Shown one piece after another: positions 12,814-63,448 of a stretch of DNA of 64,000 nucleotides. The first letter of the stretch is position 1, and each line of letters starts with the position of its first letter. The DNA comes from Selaginella moellendorffii (taxonomy: Eukaryota > Plantae > Lycopodiophyta), in the NCBI RefSeq assembly GCF_000143415.4, contig NW_003314320.1, forward strand, positions 734,819-798,818, read 5' to 3'. A program made the translations under genes and the position numbers. Under the pieces are notes generated by a model, which saw nothing but the letters and a program-made list of their open reading frames with translations, searched no databases and was not told the origin of the DNA.

Positions 12814-14505
12814 ATGAAAAAAGAGATTATTGAGTGTTTAGAAGCACTCAAGTCATCAGAGTCTACAAGCTTTCAACAAGTAAAACAAGTTCACTCTCGT
12901 ATTGCAGAATCCCATGTTTTATGTAGAGACTCTCGTATAGTAAATCTTCTAATTCAAATCTATGGTAGCTTGGGATGCCTTGGCGAGGTATATTGCATTT
13001 TCAAGACCCTACACCGACCTAGCATATTATCCTGGAACATTGTCCTTGCGGCATATGCTCAAAATGGGTATCTTGAAGAAACAAAGTCTGTGTTTGATCG
13101 AATGCCCGAAAGAAACATTGTTTCCTTTACTACAGTCCTTTCGACATTTGCTAGTGCAGGCTTTATTGACTCAGCCAAGGAAGTCTTTGAGACAATGCCT
13201 GAAAGAAACGTAGTCTCATGGAATGCAATGCTGACTGCATTTTCCCAACAAGGGCATCTTGAGGATGCGCAGATTCTTTTTGAAAAGATGCCAGAACATA
13301 CTGCTGTGTCATGGAATGTGCTTATCAACGCTTATGCAGAGCGAGGAGTTTTAGAACGAGCTCAACTGGTGTTTGAAAACGTTCCCCAAAAGGATGTTTA
13401 TTGCTGGACTATTATGATCACTGCAAATGCCATCAAAGGAAATCTGGATAGCGCTTCTAAGCTCTTTCGAGATATGCCGCAACACAGCATTGTGACATGG
13501 ACGGCCATGGTACAGGCATTTGGAGAGAACGGGAATATCCAAGAATCTCTAAATTATTTCTCCAAAATGCCCGAGAGAAACTCTTTTGCATGGACGGCAT
13601 TGATCATAGCTCACATCCACGGGCGGGATTTGGATGGCGCTACAAGGACATTCCGGAATATGCCCGACCACAACATTGTCTCGTGGACGGCGATGATCCA
13701 CGCGCACGCGGAATGCGGCAACATCGACGGCGCCAAGGCCGTGTACGACACCATGCCTGAGAGAAACGTGGTGTCGTGTACGGCCATGCTGGTGGCATAC
13801 TCCCAGGCCGGACACGTGGACACGGCGCGTCGAGTGTTCGATTCCATGCCTTTCCACAACGTCGTGGCGTGGAATGCCATGGCGGCGGGATATGCCTGCC
13901 AGGGGGACCTTTGGACAGCCAGGATGATGATGCGCAGCTGCCCGGAGAGGAATGTGGTGTCGTGGACGGCTATGATGGCGTCGTACGCCCAGTACGGTCA
14001 CTTCAACATTTCGGAATCTTTCTTCCAGCGCATTCCGGGGCGGAATCTTGTCACCTGGAACGCGTTGATCGCCGCCGCCGCCCAATCCGGCCACGCACGC
14101 CTTGCGATCGAGCTCTTTCACGAGATGATCGTGGAATCGGTCGAGCCGGACGAGATCTCCTTCATGATCGCGCTCGCGGCGTGCGCCCACCTAGGGCTGC
14201 TGGATCTCGGGCGCAGCTACTTCGCGTCGATGCTGGTCGATCACGGCGGCGGCCTGGCGGCTTGCAAGGAGCACTACACCTCGATGGTGGATCTCCTGGG
14301 ACGCGCGGGCCAGATCGATGCGGCGGCGGAGCTGATCGACACAATGCCGTTCGTGCCCGGCGGAGTCTCCCTGGTCGCGATCCTGGGCTCGTGCCAGACG
14401 CAGCGAGATCTGCCGCGAGCGACACGGGCGGCCAGGAGATTGCTGGAGATTGATCCGCGCAACTCCAGCTCCCACGTCCTCCTGTCGAGCTCCCTCAGGA
14501 ATTAG
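12814..14505 (+). CDS. PLS-class pentatricopeptide repeat protein with E domain, no DYW
   Basis: Tandem ~31-aa repeats (MPERNVVSWNAML) and C-terminal HYTSMVDLLGRAG...MPF...P..SSSHVLLS. Confidence 0.92.
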   Translation: MKKEIIECLEALKSSESTSFQQVKQVHSRIAESHVLCRDSRIVNLLIQIYGSLGCLGEVYCIFKTLHRPSILSWNIVLAAYAQNGYLEETKSVFDRMPERNIVSFTTVLSTFASAGFIDSAKEVFETMPERNVVSWNAMLTAFSQQGHLEDAQILFEKMPEHTAVSWNVLINAYAERGVLERAQLVFENVPQKDVYCWTIMITANAIKGNLDSASKLFRDMPQHSIVTWTAMVQAFGENGNIQESLNYFSKMPERNSFAWTALIIAHIHGRDLDGATRTFRNMPDHNIVSWTAMIHAHAECGNIDGAKAVYDTMPERNVVSCTAMLVAYSQAGHVDTARRVFDSMPFHNVVAWNAMAAGYACQGDLWTARMMMRSCPERNVVSWTAMMASYAQYGHFNISESFFQRIPGRNLVTWNALIAAAAQSGHARLAIELFHEMIVESVEPDEISFMIALAACAHLGLLDLGRSYFASMLVDHGGGLAACKEHYTSMVDLLGRAGQIDAAAELIDTMPFVPGGVSLVAILGSCQTQRDLPRATRAARRLLEIDPRNSSSHVLLSSSLRN

Positions 14506-15075
14506 CGTTCCTGCGGTGAGAAGGAAATCCTCGTTGTCAATCCTGCCAACGTGGCACCGAACCGCGTCTCCACGTGGACACCATCGCTCTTTCCCACTTA
14601 CGTGTTCCTTCCTTCACGTATAAGCCAATATGTCTGTCCATTTTCAAGTAAGAATAGAGACAGGACACCGGATCGACTCCTGTCCGATTACGTAAGAAAA
14701 AGACGAGCTCGGGTAATGACATGGGCGGGGGAAAAGCGATAAAAATACGAACAGCATGTCATATCCGTTTTATCACAAAGGGCTTGATGCGAAGCTTCCC
14801 GGTGGTTTGAGGGATTTTCCCCGGACAAAGGGTGCCACGGAGGGTTTTTCCCTGCCACATCAGCATCTTCCCCAAGGGAAATCCCCTTGGAAATAATAGC
14901 TGGCAAAGGGAGGGGGGCAAATATACACACACGCGAGAGAGCCGAGAGAGAGAGAGGCGATGGCGCTGACGATCGGCAATGGCGCCACACCGCGCCGGGA
15001 GTGGCAATGCCAGTAGCTAGGCGTAGCGGCAGATCACAGGGATTTCTACGCGGGCGGCGCCATAGATCAGCCAAA

Positions 15076-27781: not shown

Positions 27782-29438
27782 ATGACCAAGGGAAGCCTGC
27801 GCCGCCTGGAATTGGATTGCCTATGCCAGCCCGGGGCCGTGAGATGGATCGAGGTCTGGTTTGGCGATTGCGTGTACAGCCCGTGGGAGATTTTGGGATT
27901 TTGCGTGGGGATGTCGTCAGTGTTCTTCTGGATGATCGCCCAGATGCCTCAGTTCGTCAGTAATTTTCTTCGACAGAGCGCCGATGCTCTCTCGCCTTGG
28001 TTTCTCTTCCAATGGCTTGCGGTACGATTCCTTTCTTTCTTTTTGTTCTTTTCTTTGCCAGTTTTGTCCTGAAGATCTCCCATTTGCCAGGGCGATTCGT
28101 TAAATCTTTTGGGCTGTCTTCTTACTGGCGACCAGCTTGCGACTGAGACATTCACTGCGTATTACTTTATTTTTGCCGATGGTTTAATTATCTCACAGGT
28201 TAGTGTGTGATAAAATCGTTTTTTTCTTTGTCTCTGATCCATCTTTCTCAAATCGGTAGTACTTATACTACCGCGCTCGTAACAACAACTTCGATGAATC
28301 TGTACATAAGCCTACGAATGGTTATCAAAGCGTGCTACAAATAAACTCAGAAGATGGAACTTCCAGACCGGGTATGGGAACGAGTTTTTGTTTTCAAGCA
28401 GAAAACTCCTTGCTAAGTTCAGGCATTGTTGTTTCCAGCGGATCTTCCGACGCCTGGTCATGCAAGCAACAGCAAAGGAAAGAAGAAGCAGGATTCTAAT
28501 CGCCAGAATCAGCAAGTGCTCCAACATTCCAACGGCAGCCAGCTTGGTATTTTAGCTAGAGGGGAACGGTTCCAGGATTTCGAGGAAGAAAAGCTGCAGC
28601 ACCTTAAGTATCAAGTTGCCAAAGCTTCACAGCAGCATGCGTGTCCTTCTCGGCGCCAGTTACGAAGAGTTGTGATGGAATACGGGCTGGAGTACGGGCC
28701 TCCATCCATGTCCAAGTTCACCACACAGCAGGCGTCGCGATTGCCAAAACTTGATCTAAAGCGCACAAGCGGGAATAACAAGACCTTAAACCCGGGCTTG
28801 AAGAAAGCGCTATGCTTGGCTGGTACGGTAATGGCAGGAATCCCTGGAGGCGATGCTCTCCAGGCAAACCGGAAGCTTTTGAGGCATTGTAGTGAGAATC
28901 AAACCCAGAGCAGGCTCCAATGGGTCAAGCAAACTGGAACTTTCTTCGGGTAAGTCGTGGAGTTTTCATTTCCAGGCCTAACTTTTAGAGCTCTTCTCCA
29001 GGTGGATTTCTTCTGGACTTTACTTGGGCTCCCGGATTTCCCAGCTCGTCAAGAACAACCAGAGAAAATCAGCGGAAGGACTGTCGCTGGCGATGGTGTC
29101 GTGCGCGGTGCTCGCGAATCTCACGTATGGAGCGGCCATTTTGATGAGAGCAAAGACAATGTAAGCACGGCTTCCCGGTTTTTGTTTGTTCCGGTTTTCA
29201 GACAAACTTACTGTTTGCGTGACAGGGACGATTTGATAGGAAAAGCTCCGTGGCTTTTGGGAAGTTTGGGAACGGTGTCTCTGGACATCACCATTTTCTT
29301 ACAGGTGACAAAAAATGCCTCCAGATTTGACCGCTTCTTAACGTGTTCTTTCTGATGAAACAGGCACAATACTTGAGCTCGAGGTGCTCGAAAAAAGACG
29401 ACGAGCCAAACGAGACAACTCCGTTGCTTCCAGCGTAA
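27782..29438 (+). CDS. PQ-loop vacuolar amino-acid transporter (YPQ/PQLC2-like), multi-exon
   Basis: AQMPQFVSNF...LSPWFLFQWLAGD, APWLLGSLGTVSLDITI and a C-terminal ETTPLL dileucine-type sorting motif. Confidence 0.85.
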
Positions 29439-29613
29439 CGTCAAAGGCAAGCTTTTGGACGAGGCCCCCGTTTTTTTTCCCCATTTTTAATTTTTCTTTT
29501 GTGAATATTTTGTATGTATCGAACTCCATTCTTTGCAGTTTACAGGCTTGTGCACAAAAATTACAAGAAAAAAGAGAGAGAAAAAAACAAAGAACATGAA
29601 ATATTTTCATAGA

Positions 29614-29904
29614 TCACTCATCTTCGTGCTTCTTGCCATCGCCCTCTTGCGACTGCTTGCTACCATCGTCCTCCTCGATCTTCTCCAGCGTCTCGCCTTT
29701 CCTGATCGCCTCCTTGCCCGTCTTGTCGATCTTGAGAAGATACTTGGGCTCCTCTGGGCTGGCCTTGAAAGTTCTAGCCCCCAATTTCCTGTCCTGGGTC
29801 AGCTTCTCCACTATGTGCCCGCGCGCTTTCCCTGCGCCATAGCTCCACGCCACGCGATCGCCCACCTCAAACTCCACCTCCTTGTGCTCTTGTTGCTCGC
29901 CCAT
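29614..29904 (-). CDS. DUF2945 / Hva1 Tudor-like small protein, 96 aa, intronless
   Basis: FEVGDRVAWSYGAG...G.I.E...KASPEEPKYLLK.DKTGKEAIRK.E.L matches the family pattern as I recall it. Confidence 0.8.
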   Translation of the reverse strand: MGEQQEHKEVEFEVGDRVAWSYGAGKARGHIVEKLTQDRKLGARTFKASPEEPKYLLKIDKTGKEAIRKGETLEKIEEDDGSKQSQEGDGKKHEDE

Positions 29905-29959
29905 TGTGATCAAGCACGAAGAAGGAAGAGGGGCCCTAATTGACAAGTGTCAGTTTGTC

Positions 29960-30062
29960 AGTGACGCCGCGTGCCAAGTGTCTTAAACCGACACGTGCTC
30001 GCACCAGAGATTTCCACGTCATCGACGTCATTTAGCTGGAAAAATAAGGGTGACACGTCAGC
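29960..30062. promoter_or_regulatory. ABRE/DRE cluster in the bidirectional promoter of the DUF2945 and C2-GRAM genes
   Basis: CCGCGTG, ACCGAC overlapping CACGTG, CCACGTCA, GACGTCA and GACACGTCA within ~100 bp. Confidence 0.6.
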
Positions 30063-30309
30063 CTCTCTTTCTAGTATGGCGTCTCACGCTGCATCGCTCT
30101 CCATTGACTCTTGGCCGCGGAAGGACCTAGGGTTTTGCTATGGCGGTTTAGCATAGGATTTCCACGCCATTTGTCATATTTTGCGTTCTTGGACAGATCC
30201 TTGCGCCGCAAGATATTGCGCTCGTCATCGCGACGCAAGCTATCGGGGATTCCAGCTCCAATCGAGGCGCCGCCATGGCATTGGCTAGAATCAGTCGATT
30301 CCAGGTAGA

Positions 30310-33300
30310 ATGAAGCTCCAGGTCAATGTGTTCGAGGCGAGGGGTTTGGCCGCCAAAGATCCGAATGGCTCCAGCGATCCCTATGTGAGGTTGCAGCTCG
30401 GCCGCACGAAATCCAGCACCGGCGTCATCCATGCGTGCCTGAATCCGGTGTGGAACGAGGAGTTTGATTTCCGGGTCGATGATTCCGGGGCCGAGATTTT
30501 GATATCGGTGTGGGACGAGGATTGCTTCGCGGATGATTTCCTTGGCCAGGTCAAGCTTCCAGTGTCGAAGATTCTCGATGCGGACAAGCTAACGCTGGCA
30601 CCGGCGTGGTATAAGCTTCAACCACGCGGCGGCAAATCAAAGTCGGTTGTCACAGGTATGAAGAATTTTGCTTTTCACCACTGCTTTATAAACATTCGCT
30701 TCCAGGTGAGATTCTTTTGGGCTTTTCTCTATATGGAAGGATCAGCAATGCGGCCGAGGCCGATGTAGAGCCTGGCCTAAGGGATGGATTGCTGCATACT
30801 CCAAGTAGCTCCGCTCCAAGTTCTCCACGCACAAAGTCTTCTCCCGATACAGAGAGGCTTAAGGTTCGTTCTCGACTTGGTCAAAAGGTGACATCTCTCT
30901 TCAAGAAAAGTGCTAGGATCCATCCCAATTCGAATTCGTCACCCAGTGTTTTGTCGGATCAATCGACGGAAGAATGTGAAAGCGAAGAGGAGGAAGGCCA
31001 AGTCCCTCTATCCTTCTTTGAGAAAGGTGGTTTACAGCTCTCGACATCTGGCGACAGCGTGCCACCTCCATTATCGGGAGGTTTTCTAGCGAACCAGACG
31101 TATGCGACGAAGCTCCAGACTCTCAACTCGGTGCTGTTCAAGCCCCACTCTCCGTTCTTTGAGGAGCTGATTGCAGTGCAAAAGACAACCGATCTGGTGG
31201 AGGGGATGTGGAAGAAAGTTGGCAACGAAAACCCGAAACGAGTTCTTACGTACACGAAAGCTGCTACCGCAGTGGTAAAGTCGGTCAAGGCAACAGAAGA
31301 GCAGACTTATCTACGAGCAGATGATCGCGCCTACGTTGTTTTAGCGGTAGTCAGTACGCCTGATGTGCTCTACGGCAGCACTTTTAGAACTGAGGTGCAG
31401 TACTGCCTGACGCCGGTCTCCGAAGAGCGCTGCAACCTTTCCATATCATGGAGGCTCAACTTTATTCAGAGCACCATGGCGAAAAGGCTGATCGAAAGCG
31501 GTGCGAAACAGGGACTCACGGACAATTTCCGGCAGTATGTGGAGGTTCTTTCAAAGTATGTCGAGGAGGCTGGGGAGGACGCCGACCCCGCACCAGCAGA
31601 AGAGCAGGATGAACCCGAGAATGACATTAGCCTCACACAGGAGTACTTTTCCAGCTCGATATTCATCGTGGTGTCCTTGCTGTTCTTTCTGGTGGTACTA
31701 CTCCACATTCAGCTTGCACAGCCAACTCCGACAGTCGGGTTGGAGTTTTGGCAACTCGACTTACCGGATACTTTTGGCGAGCTATTGACATCTGCCGTGA
31801 TCACCGTCCACTTCGTTCAGCTTGGAAAAATGGCGCTGAAAAAGCTACGAGCCGCATCTTTAACAGCCGGCGACCATGGAAAGAAAGCAAAAGGTGAGGG
31901 CTGGCTCTTGACAGTGACTCTTGTGGAAGGAGAGAACCTACCTATCCGGCCAAACACAAACTGCTTGGATCCATACGTGGTATTTACATGCAGTGGGAGA
32001 ACTCGAACAAGTTCTGTGAAACTTCAGACAACTAATCCAAAGTGGGGAGGTAAGTCACTTGCAACTTTTTCTTCTGCATGTTTCTCATGGGTTTTCTGAA
32101 CAGAAATCTTCGAGTTTGATGCCACGGAGGATCCTCCATCAACCCTGGACGTAGAAGTTTTTAACTATGACGGGCCTTTTCCTGAAGCGGTGTCTCTCGG
32201 TTACGCGGAAATCAATTTTCTCAAACTCAGCCCGGATAATCTGGCCGACTTATGGATTCGTTTGGAAGGGTCGCATGCACAGACCTCTTACTCCCGTTTA
32301 CACCTTCGGATCTTTTTGACTAACACGAAGGAGGCTGATACGTTTGTTGAGTATGTGAAGAAAGTTGAGAAAGAAGCAGGAGCGAAGGTACATGATTTGT
32401 CTTATGAAGCGAAGCTAAGACCAAACCCCTGTGCAGGTCATCAAGAGCTCGAGAAAGAACGCTTCATTTCAAAAGCTCTTCTCACTTCCGCAAGAGGAAT
32501 TTCTCATTAACGACTTCGCTTGTGCTGTCAAGCGAAAGATACCTTTGCAGGTCCGTCCTTTTTTTTCCAGTTGTTCCTTACGACATTCTCGAATTACAGG
32601 GCCGCTTATTCCTCTCGCCCCGGATGCTGGGATTCTACTCAAACATTTTTGGACATAAAACCAAGTTTTCTCTTTTATGGGAAGACATAGACGAAGTCCA
32701 GGAGTTACCTCCATCGATAGCCAATGTTGGTCCCTCGATTGTGCTTTTTGCCCGGAAAGGAAGAGCTCACGACGCAAATCAAGGCTCCAAGGGCATGGAC
32801 GGGAAAGGTCGGCTTAAATTTCAGTTCCAATCCTTTGTCCGCGCTGGCCCAGCGTTTAGGTACATTTCCTTTGTTTTCATTGATGATGTAAATCACTCTA
32901 TTTTTTTCTCGCAGGACATTGATGGTACTCTGGAAAAATAGAGCCCTGACCCCGGAGCAGCAACTGGAAATGGTCGAAAATGTAGATACCGAAAGCAAGC
33001 TTTATGAAGATGGCGAGTTTATAGGCGTTGGGGACGTAACGCTGTCGGAGGTCTACTCCACTGTCTTGCCTTTGACGGTATGTTGGTTGGATCCTGATAT
33101 CTGGATGCTTATTTCCGTTGTTCGATGCCAGGCTGCTTCCATGGTGCTTTTGTACGAGAAAGAAAATCTGGAAGAGAAAGTCATGGAAAAGCTGGGATGC
33201 ATGAACTACACCGTGTCTCCCTGGGAAAACGAAGGTCCCGGCCAGAGGCGGCAAGTGAACTACAGGCTGAACCGACAGATGTGCCAATTCGGGAGCATTG

Positions 33301-61615: not shown

Positions 61616-63448
61616 ATGCTCCACTGTCGCAGCGGAGGCGTATGGATCATCCCCAAGTTTCTCATCCGTGGAATCCAGTTCTCGGCACAAAATGCGAGAA
61701 TTTCCCAGGACAGCGTCACGGCGGAGCTGCAAGCTTGCGCCGAGGCCAAGAACCTGCGAGAGGGGCGACGAATCCATGCCCAGATCGCGCAGAGCCCCCA
61801 TCTCTCCGCCAACAATTTCGTGATGAATCAGGTGATGCGGATGTATGGCAAGTGCGGCAGCCCCGAGGAAGCGCGCGGGGTTTTCGATTCGCTCGCTTGC
61901 CCCAACCGGTATTCGTGGAACATCCTCATCGCGGCATTTTCCCAGAACGGGCATTTGGAGGAAGCCAAGCAAATGTTCGACCGCTGCCCTAACAAGGGCG
62001 TGGTGACGTGGAATGCCCTCTTCCAGGCATATGCTCAGAAAGGGCATTTTCTGCAAGCCAAGAATGCATTCGATTCCATGCCAGAGAGGGACGCCATCTC
62101 GTGGAACTCGATGCTCGCCGTGGCCTCGCACCACAATCGCGTAGAGTATGCCAAGAAGATCTTCGATTCAATGCCGGCACTGAGCGTGCGGGCGTGGAAC
62201 ACGATCTGCCAAGCATTTGCCTTAGCGCGGGAATTGCCCGATGCCAAAGAGGCGTTTGATTCAATGCCCGAGAGAGATGTGATCGCGTGGACGACGATGC
62301 TCAATGCGTTCGCCGAGGAATCGGAGGTGTCATGGGTTAGGTTTTTGTTCGATCGAATGCCGGCGTGGGACACTCCCGCTTGGAACGCGCTCGCGCAGGC
62401 ATATGCCCTAGCCGGTGACGCCGCGGGTGCCAAGCGCGTGTTCGATTCCACGCCCCAGCGCGACGTGGTGACATGGACGGGGCTGCTCAACGCCGTCGCT
62501 CAGGGCGGGAATGTCCAGCAGATTGAGTTCCTGTTTGAGAGAATTCCATTCCGGAATGTGGTGACGTGGAATATCCTTGTTCAGGCATATGCCCACTCTG
62601 GGTATCTGGAGAAAGCCCGTGCTACCTTTAACGCGATGCCTACCAGCAACATTTCCTGGAATCTCATGCTAAACGCTTATTCCGATAGCGGCCACGCTAG
62701 CGAAGCCAAGGAGCTGTTTGATAGGATCCCTGACCGGGACGATGTGTCGTGGACGGCGATGCTAACTGCATATGCCCAGAATGGGCATCTGGACGAGGCT
62801 CAAGGGATTTTTGACACGATGCCCCGCCGGAATGTTGTGGCTTGGACGGCCATGATCACGGCGTATGCGCAGCGCGCTCGTGTGGATATATTCGAGGGAA
62901 TCTTCCGGCGTATATCCCAGAGGACCATCTTCTCTTGGAACTCTATGGTGGCGGCATATGCCCAGAACGGGCACGCAGTGGAGGCGGTGATGGTGTTTAG
63001 GGCCATGGCGCTCGAGGGCATCGCGCCAGATCTCATTGGCTTCTCCACTGCGCTGACGGCGTGTAGCCATGGCGGATTGCTTGCCACAGGCTGGCAAATC
63101 TTCGTGTCGATGCGCTGTGATTACGGATTGAAGCCCGGGAAGGATCACTACCGGTGTATGATCGACATTCTTGGTAGATCGGGGAGGATTATCGACGCGG
63201 AGGAGCTGATTCATAGCATGCCCTTCCTCCCCGACGAGATCGCGTGGGCGAGCTTGCTCTCTTCTTGCAAGATCCATCGCAATGCCGCAGCTGGGGCTCG
63301 TGCGGCGGCGGCAGCGCTTCGATTTGATGCCAGGGAGCCGGCCACATTCGTGCTGATGCAGGATCTCTACGCCGCCGCGAGCATCAAGAAAGAAATCGCG
63401 GATCCCTGGATCGGGGAGATTAATGGGGAGTTGGAAGAATATGGATGA
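61616..63448 (+). CDS. PLS-class PPR protein (S-repeat rich) with E domain
   Basis: MYGKCGS, tandem FDSMPERDV..W repeats, HYRCMIDILGRSG...MPF.PD..AW.SLL. Confidence 0.92.
   Translation: MLHCRSGGVWIIPKFLIRGIQFSAQNARISQDSVTAELQACAEAKNLREGRRIHAQIAQSPHLSANNFVMNQVMRMYGKCGSPEEARGVFDSLACPNRYSWNILIAAFSQNGHLEEAKQMFDRCPNKGVVTWNALFQAYAQKGHFLQAKNAFDSMPERDAISWNSMLAVASHHNRVEYAKKIFDSMPALSVRAWNTICQAFALARELPDAKEAFDSMPERDVIAWTTMLNAFAEESEVSWVRFLFDRMPAWDTPAWNALAQAYALAGDAAGAKRVFDSTPQRDVVTWTGLLNAVAQGGNVQQIEFLFERIPFRNVVTWNILVQAYAHSGYLEKARATFNAMPTSNISWNLMLNAYSDSGHASEAKELFDRIPDRDDVSWTAMLTAYAQNGHLDEAQGIFDTMPRRNVVAWTAMITAYAQRARVDIFEGIFRRISQRTIFSWNSMVAAYAQNGHAVEAVMVFRAMALEGIAPDLIGFSTALTACSHGGLLATGWQIFVSMRCDYGLKPGKDHYRCMIDILGRSGRIIDAEELIHSMPFLPDEIAWASLLSSCKIHRNAAAGARAAAAALRFDAREPATFVLMQDLYAAASIKKEIADPWIGEINGELEEYG

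Follow-up and report, generated by a model that had tools for sequence, protein, structure and literature searches.

The window analysed here, a stretch of 64,000 nucleotides (64 kb) from contig NW_003314320.1 of the lycophyte Selaginella moellendorffii, carries a small gene of the Hva1_TUDOR (DUF2945) family on its minus strand. The open reading frame (ORF) runs from an ATG at 29904-29902 to a TGA at 29616-29614 and encodes a protein of 96 aa. It is set between a convergent gene for a PQ-loop repeat membrane protein and a divergent gene for a protein with C2 and VASt domains, and a cluster of ACGT-core elements lies upstream of it (Table 1).

Table 1. Features of the Hva1_TUDOR locus, in positions of the window.
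Feature	Position	Strand	Evidence or remark
PQ-loop repeat membrane protein gene, 3′ part, convergent	28090..29438	+	short GT..AG introns; PF04193, E 6e-10; reading frames
3′ UTR	29472..29613	-	adjoins or overlaps the PQ-loop gene at its 3′ end; contig ends at 29472 (X11) and 29492 (X4)
Hva1_TUDOR/DUF2945 CDS	29614..29904	-	96 codons plus TGA stop, 0 introns; ORF, Pfam match, RNA contigs
Acidic C-terminal tail, residues 77-96	29617..29676	-	9 D/E, 3 K/R, net charge -6; pLDDT 54-62
Hva1_TUDOR SH3-like/Tudor-like beta-barrel, residues 11-76	29677..29874	-	hmmsearch envelope 11-76
5′ UTR and probable transcription start zone	29905..29998	-	contig ends at 29912, 29935, 29944 and 29998
ACGT-core cluster, four elements in sense orientation	29990..30060	-	ABRE/G-box-type
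C2 and VASt (VAD1-like) gene, 5′ part, divergent	30310..32000	+	C2 PF00168, E 4e-28; VASt PF16016, E 7.5e-33

The gene, its transcripts and its upstream region

RNA assemblies (Logan contigs from four runs, each of a different study) span 29614-29904 without any joint, their extents over the ORF being 29492-29912 (X4), 29360-29935 (X2), 29360-29998 (X1) and 29614-29944 (X11). The same contigs lack GT..AG introns, 50-67 nt long, of the two flanking genes and are therefore assemblies of RNA, and the unbroken cover of the ORF by such spliced assemblies shows it to be both transcribed and intronless. A preliminary description of this DNA had presented an intact, highly charged and intronless ORF of 96 aa, which is borne out by the ORF coordinates, by the 42 charged residues among the 96 and by the unbroken contigs; its expression is now documented by the assemblies of the four studies. 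In two of the contigs (X1 and X2) the gene is joined to the final exons of the PQ-loop gene. Five variant sites fall within the ORF among the runs, four of them synonymous changes at third positions and the remaining one T36I, a pattern compatible with a coding sequence under constraint.

In the PQ-loop gene, the CDS of which ends at 29438 on the plus strand, the RNA joints are located at 28196/28258, 28370/28438, 28948/29001, 29160/29226 and 29300/29360. Transcripts of the C2/VASt gene begin at about 30062-30211, and its CDS starts at 30310 with an intron at 30652/30703. Flanked on one contig by these ordinary spliced nuclear plant genes, the Hva1_TUDOR gene therefore stands in a genuine plant nuclear context and is not contamination, and the GT..AG joints confirm what had earlier been read from its intron-rich neighbours. 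The gene neighbours differ in Marchantia, and the Diphasiastrum gene has none within 10 kb, so that synteny is uninformative. The GC content of the ORF is 0.58, where the neighbouring exons have 0.51-0.56, and its GC3 of 0.77 lies near their 0.55-0.71. Repeats flanking the gene were looked for and none were found, nor were traces of mobile elements, and tblastn within the 64-kb window gave no paralogue. The searched protein collections held no protein more than ~67% identical and none from a source naming Selaginella, so the gene seems to be unannotated. An exact look-up of the window protein also returned no record, which says little on annotation because a PPR protein from the same window was likewise absent.

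The start context of the gene is CACAATGG, a TATA-like TTTAAG occurs ~80 nt upstream of the ATG, and the transcription start is placed by contig ends, which are not mapped starts. The ABRE-type cluster that had been noticed upstream is real, with four ACGT cores packed in 63 nt, namely CACGTGTC at -92, ACGTGGA at -115, TGACGTCG at -124 and ACGTGTC at -154 from the ATG. ACGTGTC occurs twice among them, and two or more ACGTG-core ABREs lie close to the inferred transcription start. ACGT elements are frequent in plant promoters. In the 64-kb window, two of the seven ACGTGKC sites fall in this cluster, groups of at least four ACGT cores within 120 nt are found in only two places, and at least three ACGTG[GT] sites are present in only 1% of 250-nt windows. 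Among the orthologues, those of Marchantia, of the plant-like contig L007 and of L088 have ACGTG[GT] within ~210 nt of the ATG, and neither Diphasiastrum copy has it within 500-600 nt upstream. The short promoter with its ACGT cluster is common to the Hva1_TUDOR gene and the divergent C2/VASt gene, and by its position the cluster may have the C2/VASt gene as its real target. Nevertheless, so tight an ABRE/G-box cluster 92-154 nt upstream of the ATG makes ABA control of the Hva1_TUDOR gene plausible as far as motifs can tell.

The Hva1_TUDOR domain and its relatives outside plants

The window protein (10.9 kDa, pI 5.5, GRAVY -1.35) is a member of the Hva1_TUDOR/DUF2945 family, to which the preliminary description had assigned it from its motif pattern. 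A Pfam scan matched PF11160 with an E-value of 5.7e-16 and 58.8 bits, the gathering threshold being 24.1, residues 15-73 covering the full model (profile positions 1-59 of 59), and no other Pfam family was matched; a scan against NCBIfam gave no match. In a 26-sequence alignment including the window protein, G15, V18, W20, G29 and P53 are invariant, while D16, T36, A48, Y55 and L73 are conserved in at least 90%; the conserved aromatics of the domain are W20, Y22, F46 and Y55. The AlphaFold2 model has a pLDDT of 82, with block means of 90-94 for residues 11-70 and 81 for residues 71-80, and forms six strands between residues 17 and 69. The predicted structure is an Hva1-like barrel, in agreement with the Tudor-like fold expected earlier, and the first PDB match in Foldseek is 4p5n_A, the Hva1 of Cryptococcus (TM 0.61 by target, rmsd 2.9 over 71 columns), at an E-value of 0.024, a weak figure on an absolute scale but one to be expected of a 70-residue barrel. 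After 4p5n, Foldseek lists Tudor, PWWP and SH3 domains. Royal-family Tudor domains read methylated lysine or arginine through an aromatic cage, in a chromatin or RNP setting; the similarity of the model to Tudor, PWWP and SAWADEE domains is one of general fold only. By sequence, 4p5n was reached at E 1.7e-4 with a profile, which was required, a single-sequence PDB search with the window protein having found nothing. Residues 77-96, which follow the barrel, are probably disordered judging from the model. Acidic tails are a feature of most plant-clade members, measuring 41-221 aa in 13 of 16, 20 aa in Selaginella and 3-6 aa in two, whereas the bacterial-type members, whose median length is 70 aa, comprise nothing beyond the domain.

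Hva1 of Cryptococcus neoformans (CNAG_02591, PDB 4P5N), the founding member of PF11160, is a small single-domain protein like that of Selaginella. It is 22% identical to the window protein, the conserved W is missing from it, and its AS..EP.Y segment is shortened by a gap of 4 residues; its gene has two introns, and the protein is without an acidic tail (PMC5008624). The structural neighbours PHF20 Tudor 2 (3p8d, 3qii) and plasmid R67-type DHFR (2gqv) are common to our model and the Hva1 paper. A metabolic role linked to NADP(H) was proposed for Hva1, on inference and not on established biochemistry (PMC5008624). The phenotype of Hva1, hypervirulence with TCA and NADPH changes, is specific to a fungal pathogen and does not carry over directly to plants.

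Beyond plants, bacteria account for the great bulk of the family, with members in soil Verrucomicrobiota, Nitrospirota, Acidobacteriota, Actinomycetota and Alphaproteobacteria, of which a search with a tight bacterial alignment labels one bacterial subgroup only. In these DUF2945 proteins (~70 aa, widespread in soil bacteria) the domain extends over the full length and has the same motif, GDxVxW ... G.V ... AS.(D/E)EP.Y ... SG..A.HKP..L, and they are 37-41% identical to the window protein, the named ones being 39-48% identical to that of Ginkgo. The plant proteins differ from them in the added acidic disordered tail, in forming their own clade and in having eukaryotic promoters and UTRs. To our knowledge, no function has been assigned to the bacterial proteins. 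Among other eukaryotes, the family is present in Amoebozoa (Balamuthia, Thecamoeba), in fungi and in several multi-domain proteins. The Amoebozoan proteins, the “Nitrogen starvation-induced glutamine rich protein” of Balamuthia mandrillaris and a Thecamoeba transcript, carry the same domain in a eukaryote, but as two to four tandem copies with Q/G-rich linkers. The Balamuthia name, itself an annotation transfer, hints at induction by stress or starvation; a literature search under this name turned up nothing about plants.

Land-plant distribution and origin of the gene

An exhaustive HMMER search over 1.84 billion representative proteins returned only 23 proteins at E <=1e-10, most of which belong to the plant group. 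The named members come from Diphasiastrum complanatum (2 copies), Ginkgo, Cryptomeria, Ceratopteris (2 copies), Adiantum capillus-veneris, A. nelumboides (2 copies) and Marchantia polymorpha, and nearly all of them sit on chromosome-scale contigs of 27-934 Mb, so that the other plant sequences are very unlikely to be contaminants; some further plant-clade sequences are from metagenomes or Logan assemblies. UniProt and NCBI automatically name land-plant members [quoted passage not shown], as is the case for the orthologues of Marchantia (Mp4g11650, MARPO_0011s0150), Ceratopteris (KP509_13G075400) and Adiantum (GOP47_0009102); those of Diphasiastrum (O6H91_12G016500, O6H91_07G112500), Ginkgo (Gb_40008) and Cryptomeria (SUGI_0537340) are without such a name. 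A literature search for plant members by family names and Marchantia gene ids found no paper. The nearest relatives of the window protein are land-plant proteins, those of lycophytes and gymnosperms being 54-66% identical to it over the domain. The profile search likewise leaves a gap between plant-clade matches at E <=4e-19 and the bacterial 70-aa proteins at E >=2e-16, the latter being 39-51% identical to the Ginkgo query. Land-plant orthologues share the intronless CDS and, in nearly all cases, the acidic C-terminal tail, that of Selaginella being among the shortest. The CDS is also intronless in Diphasiastrum_a, Marchantia and L007, as well as in Ceratopteris, Adiantum and Cryptomeria as judged from gene spans only, and in one plant-clade group an intron follows SDKGK. 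A single-sequence word search, too insensitive for the purpose, gave only two relatives, both intron-interrupted.

No named angiosperm, moss or alga was among the matches of the exhaustive HMMER search and two profile searches, and the gene is apparently absent from flowering plants, as had been suggested earlier. The absence from angiosperms, mosses and algae rests on clustered or word-indexed searches, in which 50% clusters could conceal members, and one profile word search missed several of its own query members, which makes its negatives weak. Small ORFs such as that of Selaginella also escape annotation, and this weakens any absence drawn from proteomes. Since Ginkgo and Cryptomeria carry the gene, any loss lies in the angiosperms; of the earlier alternative of an ancient gene lost in seed plants, the antiquity stands and the seed-plant loss does not.

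In a maximum-likelihood tree (IQ-TREE, LG+C20, 69 rows, 71 columns), the land-plant proteins form a clade with a support of 99/98. Vascular plants are recovered at 94/86, gymnosperms at 98/83, ferns at 93/41 and lycophytes (the window protein and Diphasiastrum) at 96/70, with the window protein and Diphasiastrum_a joined at 100/82, and Marchantia is found with organism-unassigned sequences on the opposite side from the vascular plants. At weak nodes, the lycophytes stand beside the gymnosperms and not outside ferns and seed plants, and the second Ceratopteris copy, on a long branch, is placed with the bryophyte-side group. Distribution and branching thus broadly follow the species tree, and we therefore consider it highly probable that this is a functional nuclear lycophyte gene, the Selaginella member of one old and vertically inherited land-plant lineage, and not a recent acquisition.

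The preliminary description had favoured a horizontal transfer, and its refutation was to be sought in a distribution matching the species tree, which is what the land-plant clade now gives. A recent transfer into Selaginella from a bacterial or fungal donor may still draw on the microbial look of the family, on the intronless ORF and on the absence of a Selaginella family protein from the collections, but it is contradicted by that clade and by the nearest relatives, which are land plants with Diphasiastrum as sister, while bacterial proteins are less than 50% identical. The exon-like composition and the normal spliced neighbourhood free of mobile-element traces also speak against it, and we hold it to be very improbable. 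We give slightly less credence still to a chance ORF, contaminant DNA or a pseudogene without protein product, in favour of which only the small size and the missing annotation can be named; as far as sequence data go, it is refuted by the full-length HMM match, the confident fold model, the mostly synonymous variants and a position on the same contig between spliced plant genes, with transcription in four studies.

A domain of only 70 columns leaves two accounts of the source of the land-plant gene, an ancient transfer from soil bacteria and an old eukaryotic gene with patchy retention. The former refines the account of an old land-plant gene and is the only surviving form of the transfer idea: a bacterial 70-aa DUF2945 gene would have entered the ancestor of land plants or streptophytes once, gained its acidic tail and thereafter been inherited vertically. 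It is a reasonable possibility, somewhat short of probable. The bacterial predominance of the family outside plants favours it, as do the identities of the window domain (37-41% to bacterial-type proteins vs 22% to Cryptococcus Hva1), the retention in plants of the bacterial-type W and AS.(D/E)EP.Y motif, unlike in Hva1, the intronless CDS across plants and the lack of a named green alga in any search. However, the plant clade is nested in no bacterial clade, its sister group being a polytomy, the intron lack is weak evidence for a 300-nt gene when one plant-clade group does have an intron, and algae were not searchable by name. Amoebozoa, fungi and multi-domain eukaryotic proteins also have the family, and a single clade of plants and Amoebozoa is not rejected by the AU test (p = 0.44). 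The presence of the family in three eukaryotic supergroup-level lineages and the outcome of the AU test favour an old eukaryotic gene, already there in early eukaryotes, with patchy retention among fungi, Amoebozoa and the land plants that do not flower. This account is nonetheless doubtful; it requires many independent losses, including one in angiosperms, the free tree leaves the eukaryotic groups apart, with the Amoebozoan tandem proteins in a clade of their own (98/94), and Hva1 is far more divergent from the plant proteins than the bacterial proteins are.

A possible role in non-flowering land plants

The Selaginella protein is predicted to be small and soluble, its one Hva1_TUDOR barrel (residues 11-76) leading into a short tail that is acidic and disordered. 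If Cryptococcus Hva1 is taken as the analogue, the barrel would most likely be a small module that binds a ligand or a protein and tunes metabolism under stress, possibly acting on the nicotinamide cofactor pool, and the acidic tail of the plant proteins would be an added hydrophilic part. Transcription would proceed via the upstream ACGT cluster, probably by means of bZIP/ABRE-binding factors. In being small, hydrophilic and charged, with a disordered acidic tail and a compact ABRE-rich promoter, the protein and its gene resemble hydrophilins and LEA-type ABA-induced proteins. Unlike LEA proteins, however, it has no sequence relation to any LEA family and is mostly a folded barrel in the AlphaFold2 model. 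One could go further and propose an undescribed class of stress proteins in non-flowering land plants, made of a bacterial-type barrel and an acidic tail, acquired once near the origin of land plants, switched through ABREs in an ABA/desiccation programme and lost in the ancestor of angiosperms; taken as a whole, this is a speculative and rather unlikely proposal.

What the locus offers at present is a correction to an attractive transfer reading, as a family of microbial appearance proves to be an old gene of land plants, inherited vertically. The short expressed ORF was seemingly missed in a reference plant genome, which weakens claims of absence or transfer that are based on proteomes. It belongs to an unstudied lineage of small proteins kept in liverworts, lycophytes, ferns and gymnosperms and seemingly dropped by flowering plants, and genes so distributed are candidates for traits retained by seedless plants and gymnosperms, for instance desiccation tolerance in vegetative tissues. 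Because only one clear orthologue (Mp4g11650) exists in Marchantia, genetic tests of the function are feasible there, and any functional result would be informative for the bacterial DUF2945 proteins and fungal Hva1 as well.

Transcription and neighborhood of the Hva1-type gene

The preliminary description had assigned an intronless ORF between two plant genes to the DUF2945/Hva1 family, and the suggested HMM check confirmed this: in a Pfam scan the product matched the entire 59-position model PF11160 (Hva1_TUDOR, formerly DUF2945) at an E-value of 5.7e-16 and 58.8 bits, well above the curated cut-off of 24.1 bits, while NCBIfam gave no model for it. The 10.9-kDa protein has a pI of 5.5, a GRAVY of -1.35 and 42 charged residues out of 96; the start context is CACAATGG. 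Coordinates are collected in the table below.

Logan contigs from four public sequencing runs, which belong to four studies and carry three coded organism labels, were aligned to window 28000-32000. They are RNA assemblies because GT..AG introns of 50-67 nt are spliced out of both neighboring genes, and they cross the ORF without a joint (29492-29912 in run X4, 29360-29935 in X2, 29360-29998 in X1 and 29614-29944 in X11), so that the gene is transcribed and, as had been proposed, intact and intronless in a plant nuclear setting. Between runs five sites vary within the ORF, four being synonymous third-position changes and the remaining one T36I. Its GC3 (0.77) is near that of the neighboring exons (0.55-0.71), and we found neither flanking repeats around the gene nor a paralogue within the 64-kb window. 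An expressed, joint-free ORF between spliced genes, with exon-like composition and no repeats or paralogue, therefore excludes contamination, already thought unlikely, as well as a chance ORF and a transposon passenger. This is a transcribed, constrained gene, and its product folds into an Hva1-type barrel and carries an acidic tail.

Features of the window around the Hva1-type gene and elsewhere
Feature	Position	Strand	Basis
Hva1_TUDOR ORF, ATG to TGA, 96 codons	29614-29904	minus	sequence
PQ-loop repeat gene, convergent neighbor	stop 29436-29438	plus	reading frames and Pfam
C2 and VASt gene, divergent neighbor	ATG 30310	plus	reading frames and Pfam
Four sense-orientation ACGT-core elements within 63 nt	29990-30060	minus	sequence motifs
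Intronless PPR ORF	12814-14505		pentatricopeptide-repeat match
Intronless PPR ORF	61616-63448		pentatricopeptide-repeat match

Every one of the seven introns seen in the two neighbors (28196-30703) is of this 50-67 nt, GT..AG kind, as is typical for plants with very compact genomes. The convergent 3′ ends of the PQ-loop gene and the Hva1-type gene (stop 29614-29616) abut or overlap within 29360-29613, and since RNA contigs of two runs merge both genes into a single record, their transcripts may overlap tail to tail across the 175-nt intergenic stretch. In X11, which carries a different organism label, 76 nt of 3′ UTR past the stop are exchanged for 72 other letters (29537-29614) beside a nearly identical ORF; either the UTR allele has diverged or the contig comes from a close relative. 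The two long PPR ORFs match with E-values of 1e-81 to 1e-86, and the exact product of the one at 12814-14505 has no record in the gene-position collection.

Fold and relatives

Structure prediction, also suggested earlier, gave an AlphaFold2 model (26-sequence alignment, mean pLDDT 82) whose six strands fall within residues 17-69; block means are 90-94 for residues 11-70 and 81 for 71-80, and confidence is low at both ends. The top Foldseek match in the PDB was the crystal structure of Cryptococcus neoformans Hva1 (4p5n; TM 0.61 by target, rmsd 2.9, 22% identity), followed by Tudor, PWWP, SAWADEE and SH3 barrels and R67-type plasmid DHFR, the same structural neighbors as given in the Hva1 paper (PMC5008624). 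A sequence profile found 4p5n at E 1.7e-4; the single protein sequence as PDB query did not match it. Cryptococcus Hva1 lacks the conserved W of the family, and a gap of 4 residues interrupts its AS..EP.Y segment; judged by sequence, the Selaginella protein is therefore of the “bacterial” DUF2945 type and not of the Cryptococcus type.

When 1.84 billion cluster representatives were searched exhaustively with HMMER, 369 proteins reached E ≤1e-3 and only 23 reached E ≤1e-10. Look-up of these matches, together with profile searches, identified land-plant proteins as the closest relatives: the lycophyte Diphasiastrum complanatum (two loci, 60-64% identity), the gymnosperms Ginkgo biloba (54%) and Cryptomeria japonica, the ferns Ceratopteris richardii (two copies), Adiantum capillus-veneris and A. 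nelumboides (two copies), and the liverwort Marchantia polymorpha (Mp4g11650). Apart from Ginkgo, a EukProt gene model, every named member was located on a genome contig, nearly all of these chromosome-scale (27-934 Mb). Metagenome, metatranscriptome and Logan-assembly sequences belong to the group as well; its MTKPEF... subgroup has an intron after SDKGK, and one member, on the 11.5-kb contig L007, adjoins plant-type genes (DIOX_N, zf-A20/zf-AN1, Fe-SOD). In the last profile search a clear step separated plant-clade matches (E ≤4e-19) from bacterial ones (E 2e-16 or weaker), and no angiosperm, moss or alga was named among its matches.

More distant relatives are large numbers of ~70-aa bacterial proteins from soil phyla. 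Among the bacterial DUF2945 members, some appear to be fused to additional modules or annotated with them: the 205-aa P0240 is named (2Fe-2S) ferredoxin, and an MS_channel_2nd domain is additionally present in 17% of the members of one cyanobacterial Atlas cluster. Other eukaryotic relatives belong to Amoebozoa (Balamuthia, Thecamoeba); in the amoebozoan and other eukaryotic proteins P0003, P0013, P0016, P0027 and P0058, Q/G/N/S-rich linkers connect two to four tandem domains, which is very different from the single-domain architecture of the bacterial and plant members. Whereas bacterial-type members consist of the domain alone (median 70 aa), most plant-clade members add an acidic C-terminal tail, of 41-221 residues and net charge -11 to -45 in 13 of 16 measured. 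That of the Selaginella protein has 20 residues (net -6) and is modeled with low confidence; the second copies Diphasiastrum_b and Ceratopteris_b have only 3-6.

The gene seems unannotated, since the protein collections searched contained no Selaginella-named protein, nor any more than ~67% identical. Exact look-ups of the Hva1-type protein and of a PPR protein from the window were likewise negative, but by themselves say little about annotation. The family is known, and its plant members are auto-annotated in public databases (UniProt names the Marchantia and fern proteins [quoted passage not shown]); our literature searches found no papers discussing them. New here is the Selaginella member of this family, which is probably unannotated.

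Probable vertical descent within land plants

In an IQ-TREE phylogeny (LG+C20+F+G4 PMSF; 69 domain rows, 71 columns; support as ultrafast bootstrap/SH-aLRT), the plant sequences (11 named and 6 unnamed rows) form one clade (99/98), comprising vascular plants (94/86) with lycophytes (96/70), gymnosperms (98/83) and ferns (93/41), and Marchantia with unnamed sequences on the other side. The Selaginella protein groups with Diphasiastrum_a (100/82) inside this clade and not with microbes; this sister position, the very short introns and the PPR genes all fit a lycophyte genome. Such a broad vertical pattern had been listed beforehand among the outcomes that would refute the horizontal transfer first suggested, which gives way here as far as a lineage-specific event is concerned. 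We regard it as highly probable that the gene belongs to the family and was inherited vertically among land plants. The coding region is also intronless in Diphasiastrum_a, Marchantia, Ceratopteris_a, Adiantum, Cryptomeria and L007. For Diphasiastrum_b (O6H91_07G112500, L090:5001-5786) the annotation begins with an extra 23-aa exon, separated by an intron from an intronless MAEGQK... ORF (L090:5544); this exon is probably a model artefact.

Deeper in the tree, the plant clade, the bacterial groups and an Amoebozoa clade (98/94) form a polytomy, and constraining plants and Amoebozoa to one clade, as old eukaryotic ancestry of the gene would have it, costs 2.9 log-likelihood units (AU p = 0.44). 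Therefore neither this ancestry nor an ancient bacterial donor is favored, and horizontal transfer shrinks to a possible ancient event.

Promoter and proposed function

The ACGT-core elements lie at -92 (CACGTGTC), -115 (ACGTGGA), -124 (TGACGTCG) and -154 (ACGTGTC) from the ATG, followed by a TATA-like TTTAAG, and RNA contigs end at 29912-29998. Of the seven ACGTGKC sites across the 64-kb window, two fall in this promoter, which is also one of only two places there with at least four ACGT cores per 120 nt; the other (14501-14690) is just beyond the end of the PPR ORF at 12814-14505. Three or more ACGTG[GT] sites occur in only 1% of 250-nt windows. Because the short promoter is common to the divergent C2/VASt gene, whose contigs start at 30062-30211, it is ambiguous which of the two genes the cluster targets. 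The same promoter contains a 14-nt direct repeat, GATTTCCACG(T/C)CAT, at 30009-30022 and 30157-30170, 148 nt apart, and in one run a 4-nt insertion (GGAC) behind 30123.

Of the orthologues whose DNA was available, those of Marchantia (-206), L007 (a G-box, -148) and L088 (-155) have an ACGTG[GT] site no further than ~210 nt from the ATG, and both Diphasiastrum copies lack one. Such sites are common in plant promoters generally and occur in ~11% of random 250-nt windows; taken as a sign of ABA control, this is suggestive only.

For Cryptococcus Hva1, the authors proposed from structure neighbors and metabolomics that it interacts with NADP(H) and influences the TCA cycle (PMC5008624). By homology, the plant barrel would be a small binding module; a nicotinamide-cofactor-linked role appears unlikely. 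The promoter and the physical character of the protein may point to ABA-type stress induction and a hydrophilin-like contribution of the acidic tail; induction by ABA or dehydration is possible though less likely than not, and the ABA link a reasonable hypothesis for this Selaginella gene.
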